A DNA stretch of 64,000 nt, taken from positions 620,001-684,000 of the forward strand of contig CBFDEM010000032.1 of assembly GCA_965603825.1 (NCBI GenBank), read 5' to 3'. The stretch's first letter is position 1; every line of letters starts with the position of its first letter. The DNA comes from Blepharisma stoltei ATCC 30299 (taxonomy: Eukaryota; Protista; Ciliophora). Below the pieces are notes generated by a model, which had not been told where the DNA came from, did no database searches, and was given only the letters and a program-made list of their open reading frames with translations. Both the position numbers and the translations under genes were made by a program. Positions 36,424 to 47,875 of this stretch are shown here, piece after piece.

Positions 36424-38583
36424 ATGGACTACTTCAACCAAGCTCATATACAGCAGAGCAGTGAAGAATCTCACGAGCTTTGACCTCCACTTAGTGCTAA
36501 AGACCGTGTCAATGAAGTCAAAATTTTGAAAGCTGGAATTACAATTAAAAATATTTTCTTTCGACGCTTATCAAGACGAGAAGCTTTTGCGAAATGAAAA
36601 GAAACAAGAACATCATACTGGTTCCAGAAGTTTAAATCAATGCTTGATGAAATCTCGAAAGAGCGTGATAGCTTGATGCAGGAAAATAGAGATCTCTTTT
36701 TAGCGTTAAAAAATGAAGATAGCTCTAGTTCAGAAGAAAATAATACTCATAAATCGGAAAGAATTTCTTTGGAACTGCCAAATATAGAAACTAATACAGT
36801 TCAAGAACTTTTTTCGGAGCTAGAACAGTTTATGGGGATTTTAAAACAAAAGAAATTTGTGCTGGATAGAGAATGGGTTAGGCTTAAAGAGGAGAAAGCA
36901 AAACGCTCGAGTAGAAGAAGGACAGAAAAAGATGATTTACAGCATATACACCAAATTAATGAAAGCATTGAAGCTCATGAAAGAAAACTGACTGAGAACT
37001 TAATGAATTACTCAATGAAATTAGAACGGCAAAGATCACATGAAGATGATGTAGAAAGAGGCCACTTCCCCACAAAATCAGCCCAATTCCAAAGCCCATC
37101 CAAGCTAAGCGAAAATCTAGACAAATTCAAAAGCAGCCTATTTCGTGGCTCAGACCCAACAGATTTCTGGGCAAGTGCTCCAAAAACAGATATTAATGAA
37201 AAATTAAAAACTCTTGAACAAGAGCTAATTAAAGAGCAGCAAAAACAAAAAGCCAACCGAGACAGACTTCAGCAAGAATATCAATTATTAGCACGAGAAA
37301 AAAAAGAAATCAAAGTAAAAGAGGAAGAATTAAAGGAATATCAAAGCTTTTTAGAAAGAGAAGGAAAACACATTCAAAAAAGCTGGCTTGAGCTCAGCCA
37401 ACTAGCTGATTCTTTAGAAACTAAACAAGGAGCGAAGCTGAAATGTTTGGCTGATAAAAGATGCCAAAGCTGGGACTGTTTTTCTAGTAAGCTATCAGAA
37501 TCTAGCTTTATTCAGCTTGAAGAAGGAGGAATTAACAACAAAGGATGAGATGAAAATATTTCCCCAAAAGAAAACGAAATTTTTGTGACTGACCAAGTAA
37601 TTCCTAAAGACTATTTTTTCACTGAATCGGTGTCAAAAATTGATCCTATTCATGATATTAAAATTGAGCCTGATGAAAGCTTTTCCCCTTATAAGCCTCT
37701 TCATTTTGAAATTACTCAATCTAAAAACAGCACTATTACTGGATTTTTGAAACAAATAAAAAATGATCTTCTGATACAATGAATAAAATATTCTCAAAAA
37801 TCAAATTATCGAATTGCGTTTTATTTATGAAAATATAATTGTTTAAAAGATAAAAATGAAAGCCCAAGAGAAGTTTTGTTAGATATATTATGACTAAAAC
37901 GACGCAAAGAGCTTAAGGCACAAGGACTGCTTACTATTGTAAAAAATATTTAGGAAAATTACAGTAAAAAACGAAGAGAATTCGAAACTAGTGCTTTTGC
38001 AAAAAAACAAAAAAAATTATTCCAAACCCATACCCTTCGAGTTCTAAAAGCTACCACAAGGCATTGGAGGCAGAGGATTTTATTTTTGATTAAAAAATAC
38101 CTTTACAAATGATTCTCAAACTCACTTTCCAATAAATCCAGTGAGCTTTGTGTGACGTTAAAAAATATCCCTCCTTCTAATCCGCCTCAAAACCAGGTTT
38201 TAAGTGTCACTACTTTAAGGGCAGATTTATCAAACAGCTCTGTATTTGATTTAAGTGCTATCACTTTACATGAAAAAAATGTCGGGATTATTAAATTTAT
38301 CTGCTTTTTGTCAAAAATTCAAGGAAAGCAAGAAAGAAATATAAATATAAGATTCAATAAATGGAATGCTTCAACAAAGAAAAAAAGCTTTGAGAATATG
38401 AAATCGGTACTTAAAGAGTTCGAAAATAGGATATCAACATTGAAAATTCAAGATACTGCATTTAGAACTGAAATTATTATACAGCAGAAAAAGCTTGAAT
38501 CTAAGCTCTCACAAATGAAAACTGTGCTGAAAAATTTGGCAGCTTGCAGTTCAACAAATAATTCCAATGCAAAAATTCAATAA
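36424..38583 (+). CDS. Long coiled-coil protein with scattered F/LxxW motifs (possible Sfi1-like centrin-binding repeats)
   Basis: One frame from ATG 36424 via several TGAs and intron 37939-37953 to TAA 38581. Confidence 0.7.
37939..37953 (+). other. 15-nt intron GTAAAAAATATTTAG
   Basis: Removes an in-frame TAG; A at -6. Confidence 0.88.
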
Positions 38584-38923: not shown

Positions 38924-39619
38924 ATGAAAATCTATATAGAGCTGATTAAAAGAATTGAAGAAGGAAACAGCTTAGAAATAGCTGCCAAAAATTTAAAGCC
39001 TAAGCTTGTCCACATTATTGAGACAATTAAACAAGAAATTGATTTATTAAAGCAACAAGAAATTTTGCTTCAGATAGCTTGTAACCACTACGATGGATTA
39101 GCTCAGAAATTTCCAGATAGAGTGAGTTTCTTAAATGATGTCTCTAGAGCTGACATGTGTGAGGTTCGTTCATTAGCCCAACCTCATATGCTTGTCCAAA
39201 TGGTAGCTGAGGGAGTCGGCATTCTACTGAATGAAAAAGAAAAATGAAATTCTTTTTATCAAAAGCTTCCTAATGGAGTATCAGCTTTATTGGATGTTGA
39301 ATATAATCAACTTTCTGAGCAAATCCTATATGATTTAGGAACGATTGTTAATGCCTATAGAAATAACACCAGGGCTTTTTATATGGTATCTAGAGCTACA
39401 GCAAAATTATTCTGCTTTTTATTAGCTACTTATGACTTAGCAATTACAATTAGAGATAATTTCCCACAGTTTACAAGCTTCAAAGATATTGATAGACTTG
39501 CAAGAAAAGAGCTTTTTGAATATAGCAACTTGGAAGCTGTTAGAAATAAAATAAAGAATAAAGAAATGGAGTTAGATTTATTGATACAATCGGACTTAAA
39601 GTTATCCAAAATATTATAG
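38924..39619 (+). CDS. Stand-alone dynein stalk/microtubule-binding-domain-like protein, copy A (231 aa)
   Basis: Coiled coil-FP-..DMCEVRSLAQP.MLVQMVAEGVGILLNEKEKW(TGA)...LLDVEYNQLSEQ...VSRATAKLFCF...FP-coiled coil. Confidence 0.75.
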
Positions 39620-39860
39620 AAGTATAAAACTATTTTTTTTAAATTAATAAAATAGCAGATGCTACTCTTATTCTCTGATAATCGAAATCGAAAAGCAAAA
39701 TATTTTTGAATACTACAGCTATTTTGCAATTTTAAAAAACCGTAGAGCGCTTCCAATTATCAAGAGACTTTAGATCTCATAACATTAAATTAATATCTTT
39801 ATTGAAATTAATATATTTAAATTCATTATTCTAATAAAAATTATAAATAAAATAAATATT

Positions 39861-40549
39861 ATGAAAATCTATTCAGAGCTGATTAAAAGAATTGAAGAAG
39901 GAAACAGCTTAGAAATAGCTGTCAAAAATTTAAAACTTAAGTTTGTCCACCTCATTGATACAACTAAACAAGAAATTGATCTATTAAAGCAACAAGAGAC
40001 TTTGCTTCAGATAGCTTGTAACGATTAGCTCAGAATTTTCCAGACAGAGTGGGTTTCTTCAATGATGCCTTTAGAGCTTCCAAATACAGGTATGAGAGGT
40101 TTACATTTGTTAGACCTCCAATGTCATTCCAAATTTTAGCTGAAGGAGTCTGCATTCTACTAAATGAAAAAGAAAAATGAAATACAATTGGTGGAAAGCT
40201 TCAAAGAGTATCAGCTTTATTGGATGTAGAATATAATCAACTTTCTGAGAAAATCCTATATGATTTAGGAACAATTGTTAATGCCAATAGAAATAACATC
40301 AGTGCTTTTGATATGGTATCTACAACTGTAGCAAACTTATTCTGCTTTTTATTGACTACTTATGACTGAGCAATTACAATTAGAGATGATTTCCCACAAT
40401 TTGCAAGCTTTAAAGATATTGATAGACTTGTGAAGAAAGAATGTTTTGAGTATAGCAACTTGAAAGCTGTTAGAAATAAAATAAAGAATAAAGAAATAGA
40501 GTTAGATTTATTGATACAATGGGACTTAAAGTTATTCAAAGTATTATAG
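39861..40549 (+). pseudogene. Dynein MTBD-like copy B, frameshifted
   Basis: Net 10-nt deletion (tgtaac^gattag versus tgtaaccactacgatggattag in A) gives TAG at 40026; the rest aligns to copy A. Confidence 0.8.
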
Positions 40550-41564
40550 AAGTTTAAAACTTTTTTAATAAATTAATAAAATAGTATATATTTCTAATAT
40601 CTTCTGATACTTATATTAATACAAGCATCAGTCCATCTTATAAAATTTATTTGATTAAGTGTTTAATTCATCACTTAACTTCTAAATTTTATATTTTGCA
40701 AGTCAACCCTGATTGGACAATGTTTTGATAGGGTTGGGATCAGCCAAAGTTAGAACACTGTCACCAGAGGAAGTCTGTTGGAACTTAGAATGATCTCAAG
40801 TAGAAATGTATTGTTGACTTAGGCACAGAAAAACAAGTAGAGTCCTTTCTTTTCTTTAAGGGTCTCGCTCATCACGAACTCTAAGACGTAAATTTATGCT
40901 TTAAATGTCTCCCTCCCAGAAGCAGGCAGGAATGCACGTGATGTCATTTAGGCAATTGCCTCTCTACCTTCTCCACTACAAAAGAAATTTTTTGGTCTTT
41001 TTGGGAAGATAAAGCGTCGAGTGTAGTGATTTTCTAGAGATAAATAGAAAATAATTAATTGCATATTGCCCATTATTGCAGAGTTAGCCTTAATTAATTT
41101 TCTTTTCTTCTTGCTTTCCAGCTAAATCGAGTATTTTTTGGGGCAAGTGAATTGAGTAGAATGCTTCTGATTCATTTTCCTCTTTCACACTAAACTGATT
41201 TTTGAAAAAAAATACGCCAAAAAACAATAGTCGTTATAATATAGGCGTCTTGTGAAGGAACCTTTTCATTTTGATATTATCCAAAAATAGTCCCTGAGCT
41301 TGAACAGCATCAAATACAAGTTGATTGCTGATATTTGAATAAATTTCCTAGGATAATATAAATTCTTCTCTTCTTCTACTCCATTCAGTGCAGGAATTGA
41401 TTAGAAAGCCTGTCCAATATCCTCCATGCGTAAAAATTTATGATTAAAAAGAAAAGCCATTGAGAGTTTCCAATTATCAAGAGATTTTAGAGCAAATAGG
41501 TTCTATATTTAAATAATATATATAAATTCATTACTCTAATAAAAATTATAAATAAAAAAAAAAT

Positions 41565-42260
41565 ATGAAAATCTATTCAGAGCTAATTAAAGGCATTGAA
41601 GAAGGAAACAGCTTAGAAATAGCTGCCCAAAATTTAAAGCCTAAGCTTGTCCACATTATTGAAACAACTAAACAAGAAATTGATTTATTAAAGCAACAAG
41701 AAATTTTGCTTCAGATAGCTTGTAACCATTACGATGGATTATCTCAGAAATTTCCAGATAGAGTGAGTTTCTTAAATGATGTCTCTAGAGCTGACATGTG
41801 TGAGGCTCGTTCATATTCCAGACCTCCAATGCTTGTCCAAATTGTAGCTGAAGGAGTCGGCATTTTATTGAATGAAAAAGAAAAATGAAATACTTTTTAC
41901 CAAAAGCTTCCTTATGGAGTATCAGTTTTATTGGATGTTGAATATAATCAACTTTCTGAGAAAATCCTATATGATTTAGGAACAATTGTTAATGCTTATC
42001 GAAATAACACCAGAGCTTTTGATATGGTATCTAGAGCTGCAGCAAGATTATTCTGTTTTTTATTGGCTACTTATGACTGAGCGATTGCAATTAGAGACTA
42101 TTTCCCACAGTTTACAAGCTTCAAAGATATTGATAGACTTGTAAGAAAAGAGTTTTTTGAATATAGCAACTTGGAAGCTGTTAGAAATAAAATAAAGAAT
42201 AAAGAAATAGAGTTAGATTTATTGACACAATCAGACTTAACGTTATTGAAGATATTTTAG
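41565..42260 (+). CDS. Dynein MTBD-like copy C (231 aa, intact with TGA=Trp)
   Basis: DMCEARSYSRPPMLVQIVAEGVGILL..W...VSRAAARLFCF; closest to copy A. Confidence 0.78.
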
Positions 42261-42572
42261 AAGTATAAAACTTTTTAATAAATTAATAAAATATTATATG
42301 CTACTAATATATTTTGTAAATATGTTTTTGTCAATAATCTGCAGTTATGAGCTCTTATGATTTTTGAACGAAAAAGAAATTTTGCAAAATCTAGAAGATT
42401 TTAAATTCTTAAAATAATTTTGAATACTACAATTATTTTGCAGTTATATAACAAACGAGAAAGATTCCAATTATCAAGAGATTTTAGAGCTCATAACATT
42501 AAATTAGTATCTTTATTTAAATCAACACATATAAAATTTCATTACTATAAAATCATAAATAAAATAAATATC

Positions 42573-43271
42573 ATGAAAATCTATTCAGAGCTGATTAAAA
42601 GAATTGAAGAAGGAAAGAGCTTAGAAAAAGTCGCCAAAAATTTAAAGCCTAAACTTGTCCACCTCATTGAGATAAATAAACAAGAAATTGATCTATTAAA
42701 GCAACAAGAGATTTTGCTTCAGATAGCTTGTAACCACTACAATGAGTTAGCTTATAATTTTCCAGATAGAGTGGGTTTCTTAAATGATATCTCTAGAATT
42801 GACATGCATGAGATTTATTCATATTCCCGACTTCCAATACTTGTCCGCATGGTAGCTGAAGGAATCAGCATTCTACTTAATGAAAAAGAAAGATGAAATA
42901 TTTTTTATAAAAACCTTAATTATGATGGATTATCAGTTTTATTGGATGTTGAGTATGATCAACTTTCTAAGCAAATCCTATATGATTTAGGAACTATTGT
43001 TAATACCAATCGAAATAATATCAACACAATTTATATGATATCTGTAGCTGCAGCAAGATTATTCCACTTTTTATTAACAACTTATGACTGAGCGATTACA
43101 ATCAGAGATAATTTCCCACAGTTTTCAAACTTCAAAGATATTGATAGACTTGTAAGAAAAGAGATTTTTGAATATAGCAACTTGGAAGCTGTTAGAAATA
43201 AAATAAAGAATAAAGAAATAGAGTTAGATTTATTGATACAATTAGACTTAAAGTTATTTAATCTATTTTAG
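42573..43271 (+). CDS. Dynein MTBD-like copy D (232 aa, intact)
   Basis: ATG homologous to A/C starts; open to TAG 43269 with TGA=Trp. Confidence 0.75.
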
Positions 43272-43801
43272 AATTATAAATTTTTTTTTTTAAAAATTAA
43301 TAAAATATTATATACTCTAAAAGAGCGTCGAAATACTTCCTCCCAGGTATTCATAAGCACTTGGTGCTTCAAATACCATGGTGGAATATTTGAGTTTCAC
43401 TATCCATCTGTAATGCTTTCTAGGCCTGACCAGAACTTGGCTCACCATCTGCATTTTGGCTCCAAGTGCATAATTTAAAAAGATGAATTATCTTCCAGAA
43501 TCAATAAACGTTTTACAGATATTAATTGCAGCTCTGATTGCCTTTCTTCATAATTTTATATATTATGTATCTCTACTAAAGTGGAAAACTAATTAAACAA
43601 TTTAATATTTAAACTACAATGAGCTGTGATGTCAAACATTAATTAAAAGCTGATAATTTAATTTTAAAAATACAAAGTCGAACAAATTCTAAGCCAGAAG
43701 TAATTTATACACTTCATTTCTCCAAGCAGTAATGAGTTTAGATTTTATTGGTCGCCTATATAAAACTAAAATATTTTATTAAAGTTATTTTACATATAAC
43801 T

Positions 43802-44517
43802 ATGCTAATAAATATGAATATTTATTCAGAGTTCATTAAAGCTATTGAGCAAGGCACCAGCTTTGAAGTAGCCGCAGCCAATCTCAAGCCTAAACTTATC
43901 CACCTTATTGAGACTACTAAACAAGAAATTAATTTATTAAAGCAGCAAGAAATTCTGTTGCAGACAGCTTGCAACTACTATAATGATTTAGCTCAGAATT
44001 TTCCAGATAGAACAGGCTTTTTAAAAATTTTTGATAGAATAGAATTGTTGGAGCTTGGTTCATTTTCCTGGCCACACCCTATTATCCCTGTAGCAGAAGG
44101 CATCAGCACAATTCTAAATGAACACGGAATTTTTATGAAAAACTAATTAATCCTTTGCTACCTTCTTTAATGAATGTTGATTATAATGATATTTCTGAGC
44201 AAATCCTACAGGATTTAGGACTAATTGTGAATTCCAATCGAAATAATATTAATCAGATATACAGCATGTATAGAGGTGCTGGGAGATTATTTAGCTGGCT
44301 AGTAACTACTTATGATTGAGCTATTACAATTAGAGACCATTTCCCAAAATTTTCAAATTTTAAAGAAATTGATAGACTGATAAAAAAAGATTTCTTAGAA
44401 TATAGCTCCTTATGCGCAGTCATTAATTCAATAAAAAATAGAGAAAAAGAACTAGAATTATTAGAAAATGCTGATCTTCTAATTACAGATATTAATCACA
44501 ACACTAATTTGCCTTAA
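43802..44517 (+). pseudogene. Dynein MTBD-like copy E, frameshifted
   Basis: Net 10-nt loss across the KEKW codons relative to copy F gives TAA at 44144; downstream half still aligns. Confidence 0.75.
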
Positions 44518-44799
44518 TTCATAATTTTATATATTAGTGTTATTATTCTGGAATTTTTTACTAAAATGGAAAATCGTTAAATAATTTAATATTTAAACTA
44601 CAATGAGCTGTGATGCTAAACATTAACTAAAAACTGATAATTTAATTTTAAAAATGCAAAACCTATCACACTCTAAACCAAAAGTAATTAAAAAACTTAA
44701 AAACTATTACACTTCATGACTCCAAGCAATAAGAATTTAGATTTTATTGACTGATCCCTGTAAAACTAAAATTTTGATTAAGTATTTTACTTAGAACTA

Positions 44800-45519
44800 A
44801 TGCTAATAAATATGAATATTTATTCAGAGCTAATAAAAGCTGTTGAGCAAGGTACCAATTTTGAAGTAGCCGCAATCAATCTCAAGTCTAAAATTATCCA
44901 TCTTATTGAGACTACTAAACAAGAAATTAATTTATTAAAACAGCAAGAAATTCTGCTGCAGACAGCTTGTAACTACTATAATCGTTTAGCTCAGAATTTT
45001 CCAGATAGAATAGGTTTCTTACAAAATATATCTCTTAGAGACATGGTGGAGCTTCGCACATATGCCCGGCCTCACCCTATTATCATCCCTGTAGTAGAAG
45101 GAATTAGCATAATTCTAAATGAAAAGGAAAAATGAGTGAATTTTTGTCAAAAATTAAATTTCAACTGACTACCTTATTTAATGAATATTGATCATAATGC
45201 ACTTTCTGAGCAAACCCTACAGGATTTAGGACTAATTGTAAATGCAAATCGAGATAATATTAGTCAGATTTACATGATGTCAAGAGCTGCTGGGGAATTA
45301 TTTCGCTGGCTAGTAACTACTTATGATTGAGCTATTATAATTAGAGATCATTTCACACAGTTTTCAAATTTTAAAGAAGTTGATAGACTAGTAGAAAAAG
45401 ATTTCTTAGAATATAGCTCTTTATGTGCAGTCATTAATTCCATAAAAAATAAAGAAAAAGAGCTAGATTTATTAGAAAATATTGAGCTCCCAAGGATTAA
45501 TAAAATTTTAGGACTATAA
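44800..45519 (+). CDS. Dynein MTBD-like copy F (intact)
   Basis: DMVELRTYARPHP..VVEGISIIL..W...MSRAAGELFRWLVTTYDW; open to TAA 45517. Confidence 0.78.
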
Positions 45520-45947
45520 ATTTATATTATCTTAAATTAAGACAGCGTTTATTATATTTTATTATCCTCCTCTCTTATATACAGCACAAAGTACTTGAGG
45601 TTAGCTCATATTCCATCCACTCTTGGTAGAAATAAGAAACACTACATTTGTATTTTTTGGCTGCATATTCATATAAGTTTATAGGATTAGTACTTAGATA
45701 TTGTTGCGACTACATTGTTACGTATTTGGGTACTCATTATAGCTCTTCCAATAAAAAACATTTTCAAAAATTTGACGTAAATACGCTCTATCCGATAATT
45801 AATTTTTAAAATACAAAATCGAACACACTCTAAGCCGTAAGTAATTTATAAACCTCAAAATTACTACACTTCATTTCTCCAAGCAGTAAAGAAGTTAGAT
45901 TTTCTCTAAAAACTAAAATTTTTATAAGGTTATTTCACTTAAAACTA

Positions 45948-46666
45948 ATGCTAATAAATATGAATATTCATTCAGAGCTCATTAAATCTATTGAGCAAGG
46001 TAACAGCTTAGAAGCAACCGCAGTCAATCTCAAGTCTAAACTTATCCACCTTATTAAGACTACTAAACAAGAAATTAATTTATTAAAACAGCAAGAAATT
46101 CTCTTGCACACAGCTTGTAACTACCTCATGATTTAGCTCAGAATTTTCCAGATCGAAGGGATTTCTTAAAACATTTTGAGAGTAAAGACATGGGAGAACT
46201 TCGCCCATATTCCCGACTTCACACTCTTCTTATCCCTGTAGCAGAAGGCATGAGCACAATTCTAAAAGGAAAGGAAAAATGATATAATTTTTCTCAAAGA
46301 TTAAAGGTACCTGTGATACCTTATTTAATGAATATTGATCATAATGCACTTTCTGCGCAAACCCTACAGGAAATAGGACTAATTGTAAATGCAAATCGAA
46401 ATAATATTAATCAAATGTGAGGGTTATCACTAGCTGCTAGGGGATTATTTGGCTGGCTAGCAACTACTTATGATTGATCTATTACAATTAGAGATCGTTT
46501 CCCACAGTTTTCAAATTTTAAAGAAGTTGATAAACTGGTAGAAAAAGATTTCTTAGAATATAGCTCTTTATGCACAGTCGTTAATTCCATACAAAATAAA
46601 GAAAAAGAGCTAGATTTATTAGAAAATTATGAGCTTCCAAGAATTAATAAACTTTTAGGACTATAA
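45948..46666 (+). pseudogene. Dynein MTBD-like copy G, frameshifted
   Basis: 1-nt deletion after aactac near 46125 gives TAG at 46134; the remainder is open in the shifted frame. Confidence 0.7.
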
Positions 46667-46708
46667 ACTTATATTATCTTAGATTAAGACAGCGTATATT
46701 ATATTTTA

Positions 46709-47875
46709 TTATCCTCCTCTGCTGATATAAAGCACAAAAGTATCTCCTATCCTCAGCTCTAGTGCTTTATGTCTGTCATATACAAATCCCATCCTTTTTA
46801 CTTCAGTCACTATTTCTACACCAGGCTTTTTAATTTCAATCTGAATCCCTATCCTTGATACACTATCAGGTACAATACCCGCTTTTTCAGCTTTATAAGT
46901 ATTTCTTGACACAGTCACGTCAACCCCTGCAAATTCGCTTCTAACTAGCTTCAAAAAAGGGTAAAAATAGTCATACACATATACTTGGTTAGGCTTCCCA
47001 TAATATTCTCCATCATATCACTCAGTCTGTGACAGCTCAAGCTCACAATGTCTGGACACATTATAAAGATAAAGCTTTTTCTTTATACCGTCTGAGTCAT
47101 CCTGAGGAGTTTTTGGAAATTCAGGCTCTAATTGTAAAGATTTTAAGATTTCGTGTGTATTTTGGATTATTGGGGCTTGCCAATGGACACTTTCAAGCTT
47201 AATCAGGCCCATTAAATTGAACCAGTTAATAGCAATTTCTATATTATCGCTTATACACACAGCAGTAATTTGTTGTGTGAAAGCTCTTCTGATGTCTTCT
47301 CCATTAAATTTGCATTCGTCTCGATGTGCTCACAATTTTCTTTTGCCTTTATTTATGCAGTCGAACTTGAATTCTGATTTATATACATAATCAGATGAGT
47401 ATAGCTTGTAAGTGTACCTTAGTTTAATAGTGTGGTTTATTAATATTGGCAGAAGCTCAGCAACGATTATTCTATCAACCCTTATTCCTTTTCTTTCAGC
47501 CACAGCAATATTGGTGATATCATGGTAACTTTTTTTGAAGACTAATAAATGTGAATGAACTAATGCGAACTGAGATTCTACTGAGTTAAAAGCATGATCC
47601 ATAGCTTCCATAACTTTGACGTGTAGAGAAGCTGATAAAGCAAGAACTGTTCTTAAGTCACCCGCAAGATATTGCAGTATTCGAAAAAATGCAATTTCTG
47701 GGAGCGATAATAAGGATAGAGAGGATTTTGAATTTTGAGAGCTAAGGACTCTTTTAATCATACCTGTGTAAAGGTGTTTTCGTCTTCTTCTCATATTAGA
47801 AATATGTTTTGAACGTGTTAATTTCCCTTCGATTACTTCATCTGTTTCTTTTGGATGTGATAAATAAGGTCCCAT
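46709..47875 (-). CDS. Uncharacterised 388-aa protein with F-box-like motif
   Basis: Three ORFs in one frame joined by TGA at 47330 and 47018; LLSLPEIAFFRILQYL. Confidence 0.75.

Follow-up and report, generated by a model that had tools for sequence, protein, structure and literature searches.

Motor-less dynein stalk hairpins encoded by a tandem gene array of the ciliate Blepharisma stoltei, candidate non-motor binders of the microtubule lattice

The macronuclear genome of the ciliate Blepharisma stoltei ATCC 30299 comprises 41 Mbp, reads UGA as Trp and features tiny introns, and an RNA-seq time course was deposited in 2022 (PMC9942806). The present analysis concerns a tandem array of seven paralogous genes at positions 38924-46666 of a 64,000-nucleotide stretch of this genome (contig CBFDEM010000032.1, positions 620,001 to 684,000), which is referred to as the window and to which all coordinates given without a contig refer. 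The genes encode, or formerly encoded, small proteins homologous to the tip of the dynein stalk, i.e. the microtubule-binding domain (MTBD) together with a part of the coiled coil that carries it.

Translation with genetic code table 4 (TGA=Trp), in which TGA codons were read through by script and splicing was needed for no model, yields seven paralogues of about 231 codons each on the forward strand of the window. Four of them are intact, namely copy A (38924..39619; 231 residues, P0005) with one TGA at codon 108, copy C (41565..42260; 231 residues, P0006) with TGA at codons 108 and 172, copy D (42573..43271; 232 residues, P0007) and copy F (44812..45519; 235 residues, P0004), the last being the most dynein-like copy. 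All intact copies feature TGA at codon 108, which specifies the tryptophan of the third MTBD helix (H3), and C, D and F contain one to two additional TGA codons. The other three copies are broken: in copy B (39861..40549) a 10-nt deletion at approximately codons 56-59 is combined with a 6-nt insertion, and according to the nucleotide alignment a TAG is reached after 55 codons; copy E (43814..44517) carries a 10-nt deletion, by which the H3 Trp codon is lost, together with a 3-nt deletion, its N-terminal 110 residues corresponding to P0008; and copy G (45960..46666) bears a 1-nt deletion at about codon 57, its C-terminal 158 residues corresponding to P0013. Seven same-strand paralogues, four intact with TGA as Trp and three frameshifted, had already been described by a model that saw the letters alone (hereafter the sequence-only reading), and this description is borne out by the table-4 translation and the nucleotide alignment, as is the motif order FP, DMxExRS..P, VAEGxxILL, W, LLDVEYNQLSE, SRAAxxLF, FP, which was found in every copy.

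By nucleotide identity the copies fall into two subfamilies, A-D (84-93%) and E-G (82-86%), with about 70% identity between the groups. Each copy is accompanied by conserved flanks of ~140 nt upstream and ~40 nt downstream, the spacers measure 241-1015 nt, and the array is the product of whole-gene duplications. About 80 nt 3' of copy F (45520-45600) are repeated 3' of copy G (46667-46745), and the sequence downstream of both copies includes the 3' end of a minus-strand gene (46709-47875); hence, the F/G duplication unit extended into the neighbouring gene. Although copies B and G belong to different subfamilies, their breaks fall within one stretch of ~15 nt at codons 56-59 (40020-40035 and 46120-46135), each amounting to -1 base modulo three and each reaching TAG in a homologous ...TTAGCT context; this shared break point is probably a coincidence. 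No Rfam match was obtained between positions 38000 and 47500, and no convincing open reading frame (ORF) was seen in the array spacers, both strands of the spacer between copies B and C included.

The array ORFs are present in the public annotation as unnamed proteins (P0004-P0008 and P0013) without any Pfam domain and were therefore not missed as genes but only unrecognised as dynein-like. The expectation of the sequence-only reading that annotation in the standard code, which cuts each ORF at the H3 Trp (TGA at codon 108), would overlook the genes does not hold. In the searches described below, TGA-bearing proteins were used as separate pieces or as database entries identical to the table-4 translation.

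In a dynein heavy chain of ~4,000-4,700 residues, the stalk is inserted into a ring of six AAA+ modules with a linker, between AAA4 and AAA5, while the array ORFs comprise 231-235 residues, possess their own start and stop and are devoid of an AAA+ ring. Common to the array proteins and the dynein heavy chain (PF12777; structures 3ERR, 5AYH, 3WUQ and 6RZB) is the order of a first coiled-coil helix (CC1), a proline, helices H1-H6, a second proline and a second coiled-coil helix (CC2). In addition, they share the near-invariant residues of the stalk (D, E and PP in H1, the Trp of H3, S-A and W in H6) and the spacing of 16 residues between the H6 Trp and the CC2 proline, for which the alignment agrees with the dynein consensus, as the sequence-only reading had stated for copies E and G. 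Preserved in copy C are P64, P181, D77, E80, P87/P88, V91, V94, W108 and S156/A158, all of which are nearly invariant in dyneins. On the other hand, the array proteins comprise only about the distal half of the dynein stalk (in the relative on contig C46 introduced below, positions ~64-254 of the 344 of PF12777), a family-specific N-terminal helix is added, and the MTBD of the array is 4-5 residues shorter, acidic and without the basic pair of H3.

Homology of the array copies to the dynein stalk tip and MTBD, the central claim of the sequence-only reading, was confirmed by several tests. A hidden Markov model (HMM) built from the stalk regions of 10 dynein heavy chains of the same genome scores copy F with 44.3 bits and copies A, C and D with 32.6-33.2 bits (E-values of 1.5e-11 to 5.5e-8 at Z=25,000), the alignments covering the globular MTBD and not the coiled coil; as controls, 10,000 shuffled sequences reached a maximum of 12.7 bits and reversed sequences remained below 0. 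A profile restricted to array copies A, C, D and F and a paralogue on contig C12 matches, by hhalign, a profile of 23 dynein stalks with 98.4% probability (E 1e-14, 136 columns). Moreover, a phmmer search of copy F against all PDB sequences returned exclusively dynein heavy chains or isolated dynein MTBDs among the best 15 matches, all aligned at the MTBD and headed by DNAH6 (E 4e-5), and 30 of the 30 clusters nearest to copy C by language-model features featured PF12777. Finally, tblastn with 1,330-residue AAA4-stalk-AAA5 segments of dynein against the 64-kb window matched the array alone, via the stalk/MTBD part alone (E 5e-10).

The Pfam profile PF12777 itself, by which the sequence-only reading had proposed to verify the assignment, gave no match for copies A, C, D and F even at E<=10, neither whole nor in pieces; the copies do not reach its curated gathering cut-off (24 bits), and a genome-wide scan with PF12777 also passed over the array. 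This result speaks against formal membership in the Pfam family but leaves homology untouched. It is, however, what could be cited for the notion that the array is an artefact, in which coiled coils resemble each other by chance or a dynein heavy-chain gene has been broken into pieces, a reading that was rejected on the basis of the shuffle control, hhalign and tblastn and whose probability is negligible: the matches lie in the globular MTBD instead of the coiled coil, a gap of ~20 bits or more separates them from the shuffled sequences, tblastn of the AAA4-stalk-AAA5 segments detected no AAA+ motor or other dynein segment in the 64-kb window, and the individual copies come with separate start codons (ATG), stops and flanks, the same ORFs being found in the public annotation.

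The predicted fold is in line with this homology over the whole length of the protein. The AlphaFold model of copy C (predicted local distance difference test, pLDDT, 87; predicted template modelling score, pTM, 0.71) comprises an N-terminal helix (residues 3-12), a long helix (17-62), short helices within residues 66-179 and a second long helix (186-230). Projected onto the forward strand, the CC1 helix, as assigned by DSSP on the model and followed in the alignment by the conserved proline P64, occupies 41613..41750, the globular MTBD-like domain with H1-H6 (residues 66-179; model, Foldseek, hhalign) 41760..42101, the TGA codon of W108 in H3 41886..41888, and the CC2 helix, which succeeds the conserved proline P181, 42120..42254. 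The model thereby displays a predicted six-helix globular domain that sits on an antiparallel coiled-coil hairpin and is joined to it through a proline on either side (P64, P181). Each gene of this type encodes two antiparallel helices of ~45 residues, which represent the distal half of the dynein stalk, capped by a six-helix MTBD homologue; the short family-specific N-terminal helix precedes the hairpin, and the AAA+ motor is absent.

When the copy C model was compared with the PDB by Foldseek, the best 50 of 50 matches were dynein stalk/MTBD structures (5AYH, E 1.2e-6), so that the structural check suggested by the sequence-only reading turned out in its favour. Superposition on the microtubule-bound MTBD 6RZB_C gave a template modelling (TM) score of 0.66 and a root-mean-square deviation of 3.8 Å over 140 columns, and a shape search of the ESM Atlas retrieved mostly PF12777 clusters. 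Dynein stalks were among the rows of the alignment from which copy C was folded and may bias the model towards the dynein fold. The relative on contig C46, folded from only 7 mini-protein rows, attained a pLDDT of 89.9 and matched dyneins exclusively (224 columns).

This relative emerged from scans of the 41.46-Mb, 64-contig assembly, in which PF12777 detected the dynein heavy chains and one short open frame on contig C46. The latter encodes P0001, a conserved stand-alone, single-copy protein of 225 residues (C46:697634-698308, equivalent to L011:3635-4309, minus strand), which scores 64.4 bits with PF12777, contains no TGA codons and is automatically named 'Dynein heavy chain coiled coil stalk domain-containing protein' in UniRef. 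A complete transcript ORF of 225 residues in MMETSP1395, P0002, is 70% identical to P0001; MMETSP1395 is presumably B. japonicum. Both P0001, encoded in the same genome as the array, and P0002 share architecture, approximate length and free-standing nature with the array copies, although P0001 differs by its single copy, the lack of TGA, the PF12777 match, a basic MTBD and an R-K pair in H3, and is 22-24% identical to the array copies. An HMM of the array in turn scores the C46 protein with 45 bits.

Profile scans of the genome further revealed P0018 (C12:681521-682231, plus strand), an array-like protein of 241 residues that groups with the array, and P0049 (C53:316716-317207, minus strand), a C46-like protein of 166 residues that ends after H6. 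An N-terminal signature, M-x-x-Y-S-x-[IL][IL]-x-x-[IV]-E, is present in the C46 protein, its orthologue, the C53 and C12 proteins and all array copies, and has no counterpart in the dynein consensus. The family of mini-proteins is thus recognised by a length of ~225-240 residues and the signature helix followed by CC1, MTBD and CC2, a composition which the array copies exhibit. Two weak partial matches of the same scans are possible remnants, one at C14:592063-592437 (minus strand), which contains stops other than TGA, and one at C55:486138-486581 (plus strand), which contains none besides TGA. Two PF12777 matches considered as further motor-less genes were rejected, the one on C41 being a real dynein heavy chain and the one on C14 a weak match amid unrelated long ORFs.

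A tree built from 100 MTBDs unites the array and the C12 protein in a clade (Shimodaira-Hasegawa-like approximate likelihood ratio test 99) on a very long branch of 1.98 changes per column. A tree in which all 7 Blepharisma mini-proteins stand together exceeds a quick free search by 16.6 in log-likelihood and yields p = 0.71 in the approximately unbiased test; monophyly is thus not rejected. The C46 gene is probably the archetype of the family. Given the family link to C46 and the mini-protein tree, the array is read as an offshoot of an older stand-alone gene: to judge from sequence comparison, it is probably a fast-evolving derivative of a C46-type gene rather than a piece newly excised from a dynein gene. 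Of the proposal that free modules were excised from dynein and expanded, the free-standing tandem family therefore stands, while direct origin from a dynein gene gives way to a probable older stand-alone ancestor. No orthologue of the array was seen outside B. stoltei in profile and homologue searches. One of these, with the 107-residue first piece of copy C and aimed at standard-code ORFs of B. japonicum, gave no match, but since it did not list the fragment of copy E either, its blank carries little weight.

The selective regime of the array was assessed from the ratio of nonsynonymous to synonymous substitutions (dN/dS) by the Nei-Gojobori method with table 4 and codon bootstraps. Between the subfamilies, dN/dS amounts to 0.34-0.37 (confidence interval, CI, 0.22-0.55) at a dS of ~0.85, with no bootstrap replicate at 1. 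Among individual pairs, values of 0.40 for A-C and 0.53 for F-E were obtained, in addition to 0.91 for A-D, 0.68 for C-D and 0.91 for F-G, the CIs of these last three including 1; copies D, with 0.7-0.9 in comparison with A and C, and G are close to neutral evolution. Between subfamilies, the MTBD evolves faster (0.46-0.52) than the coiled coils (0.17-0.31). The pattern is one of birth and death, with long-term constraint, several relaxed copies and three dead ones, and the copies give the impression of offshoots of the older gene that diversify and in part decay.

These data bear on the proposal that the array is a recent tandem amplification in the course of being lost, whose intact copies are transcribed without a function of their own, so that only the C46 gene matters. 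Such a scenario would accommodate the frameshifts in three of the seven copies, the near-neutral ratios of A-D, F-G and C-D, the occurrence of sequencing-run contigs also on the broken copies E and G (see below) and the failure of the profile search, and of the weak search with the 107-residue piece, to find an orthologue in other species. It is opposed by the constraint between the subfamilies and in the A-C pair, by four ORFs that remain open over ~700 nt in AT-rich DNA and by the conservation of the promoter-proximal and 3' flanks, and it is regarded as quite improbable.

Evidence for transcription stems from four runs of one 2022 study, in which about one third of the words sampled from the stretch were found and whose assignment to RNA is a guess only. 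Contigs of these runs were mapped on positions 41300-46700 (copies C-G) and sit on the coding parts of all five copies, the broken E and G included, while bins located wholly inside the spacers after C, D and E are empty in all four runs and those after F contain traces only. This pattern fits transcripts and not genomic DNA. The contigs as such give no expression levels, strand or transcript ends. One contig covers the left edge of the mapped stretch, upstream of copy C. In the B-C spacer (40633-41474), contigs of three runs were seen, one of 842 nt from X2 with its end at 41474 and shorter ones from X1 and X3 at 41300-41479; hence, this longest spacer seems to be transcribed.

Whether such proteins would bind microtubules was approached via charge, for which dynein-conserved charged columns were compared instead of published tubulin contacts (10.1101/590786 names only K3299). 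With a net charge of -1 to -3 (isoelectric point, pI, 5.2-5.9), the array MTBDs fall below the median of +2 for dynein MTBDs, and they contain 11-13 K/R against 16-22 in most dynein MTBDs. The basic pair of H3, conserved in dynein, is replaced by Y-Q, and the basic residues of H1 are retained. The C46-type MTBD, on the contrary, is basic (net charge +2/+3, pI 8.7-9.2; 8.7 for C46) and keeps an R-K pair in H3. Judged by these residues, microtubule binding would be likely for the basic C46 protein, while the acidic array copies would presumably bind more weakly or in an altered way; for the latter, binding is only plausible and uncertain, because their MTBDs are acidic and lack the H3 basic pair.

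The same features could indicate a repurposed fold, in which the dynein-type hairpin no longer binds microtubules, the acidic surface engages another partner and the diversification reflects selection on the new interface. To the acidity, the low K/R content and the lost H3 pair, this proposal can add the higher dN/dS of the MTBD relative to the coiled coils and the very long branch of the array and C12 proteins. However, the array has kept the basic residues of H1 along with every structural hallmark residue, the net charge of genuine dynein stalk rows ranges from -5 to +9, so that some of them are as acidic as the array, and no search pointed to an alternative partner. Hence, a repurposed fold is considered unlikely.

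That a module of this kind can work is illustrated by engineered fusions of the MTBD to seryl-tRNA synthetase (SRS) (Carter 2008; Lacey 2019; 10.1101/590786), which similarly consist of a short stalk hairpin and an MTBD without a motor and bind microtubules unaided. With 3 or 12 stalk heptads on SRS, the MTBD binds at the intradimer interface of tubulin, and the register between CC1 and CC2 sets its affinity (10.1101/590786). In those artificial fusions the SRS base holds the register fixed, whereas in the natural proteins it would depend on the end of the hairpin and the N-terminal helix.

The preferred interpretation, to which a probability of roughly 55% is assigned, is that of a tandem family of motor-less stalk-MTBD hairpins acting as non-motor lattice binders, likely so for the C46 protein and in a weaker or altered manner for the array. 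The hairpin would present its MTBD to the intradimer groove of tubulin in the manner of the engineered stalk-MTBD fusions. Binding would be constitutive instead of nucleotide-gated, because no AAA+ ring is available to shift the CC1/CC2 register, which may be fixed by the hairpin end together with the N-terminal helix. The proteins may thereby occupy or mark the footprint of dynein on the lattice. Microtubule-associated protein, dynein brake and decoy are the putative roles put forward by the sequence-only reading. Several of the above observations weigh against this interpretation: the net charge of the array MTBDs and their exchanged H3 pair, the faster evolution of the MTBD, the near-neutrality of copies D and G and the loss of three of seven copies, the negative outcome of the searches for orthologues and of that with PF12777, the dynein stalks in the folding alignment of copy C, and both the guessed RNA type of the runs and the limited content of their contigs.

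Motor-less MTBD proteins also occur elsewhere. A profile search of 1.84 billion representatives yielded 2,294 matches, of which the top-scoring ones below Blepharisma's own are mostly non-dyneins with several MTBD matches, and at least two MTBD domains were found in 65 of 166 retrieved protein sequences. These poly-MTBD proteins (among them P0157, P0009, P0010, P0011, P0014, P0015, P0160, P0161, P0020 and P0021) contain 2-9 tandem MTBDs and no motor, and originate from an MMETSP transcript with complete ORF, Diphylleia (P0021), Picozoa (P0020) and environmental eukaryotic contigs. P0157 features nine MTBDs within 1,568 residues at a period of 173 residues, P0010 six and P0015, the complete MMETSP ORF, four, and one poly-MTBD protein is a single 2,241-nt ORF flanked by eukaryotic genes. 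Since they are found in other protists, motor-less MTBD proteins are not confined to Blepharisma.

Like the Blepharisma proteins, poly-MTBD proteins are built from the dynein MTBD, and PF12777 is the only domain that Pfam detects in them, restricted to positions ~90-210. They differ in that each chain comprises several globular MTBDs joined by linkers without a long stalk hairpin, whereas in Blepharisma every gene encodes one MTBD with its hairpin, multiplicity being reached at the gene level. Among the best 150 of the 2,294 matches, the hairpin form was seen in Blepharisma only. Additional roles of the domain outside motors are hinted at by an oomycete cluster of the ESM Atlas, which joins Impact_N to PF12777, and by the environmental protein P0107 (299 residues), which looks like one more free hairpin of stalk and MTBD, with ends that are not those of dynein. 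A literature search returned no description of stand-alone, motor-less or tandem MTBD proteins, the poly-MTBD type included, and the automatic UniRef name of the C46 protein is the sole label in existence.

So far, the dynein MTBD has been treated as existing solely at the tip of a motor of ~4,000 residues. It is conceivable, albeit doubtful at present, that the Blepharisma hairpins and the protist poly-MTBD proteins make up one class of microtubule-associated proteins without a motor, widespread and so far overlooked, that sits on the footprint of dynein and kinesin and within which the array might be tuned to different microtubule populations or tubulin modifications of the heterotrich cortex, as competitors or brakes of motors. 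As highly diverged members escape Pfam, such a class is probably undercounted in protist genomes. Taken together, natural free stalk-MTBD hairpins and bead-on-a-string poly-MTBD proteins would add a new type of microtubule-associated protein, would constitute natural experiments on how stalk register sets affinity without an AAA+ ring, and, being small and expressible, would be available as probes of the site to which dynein binds or as competitors for it.

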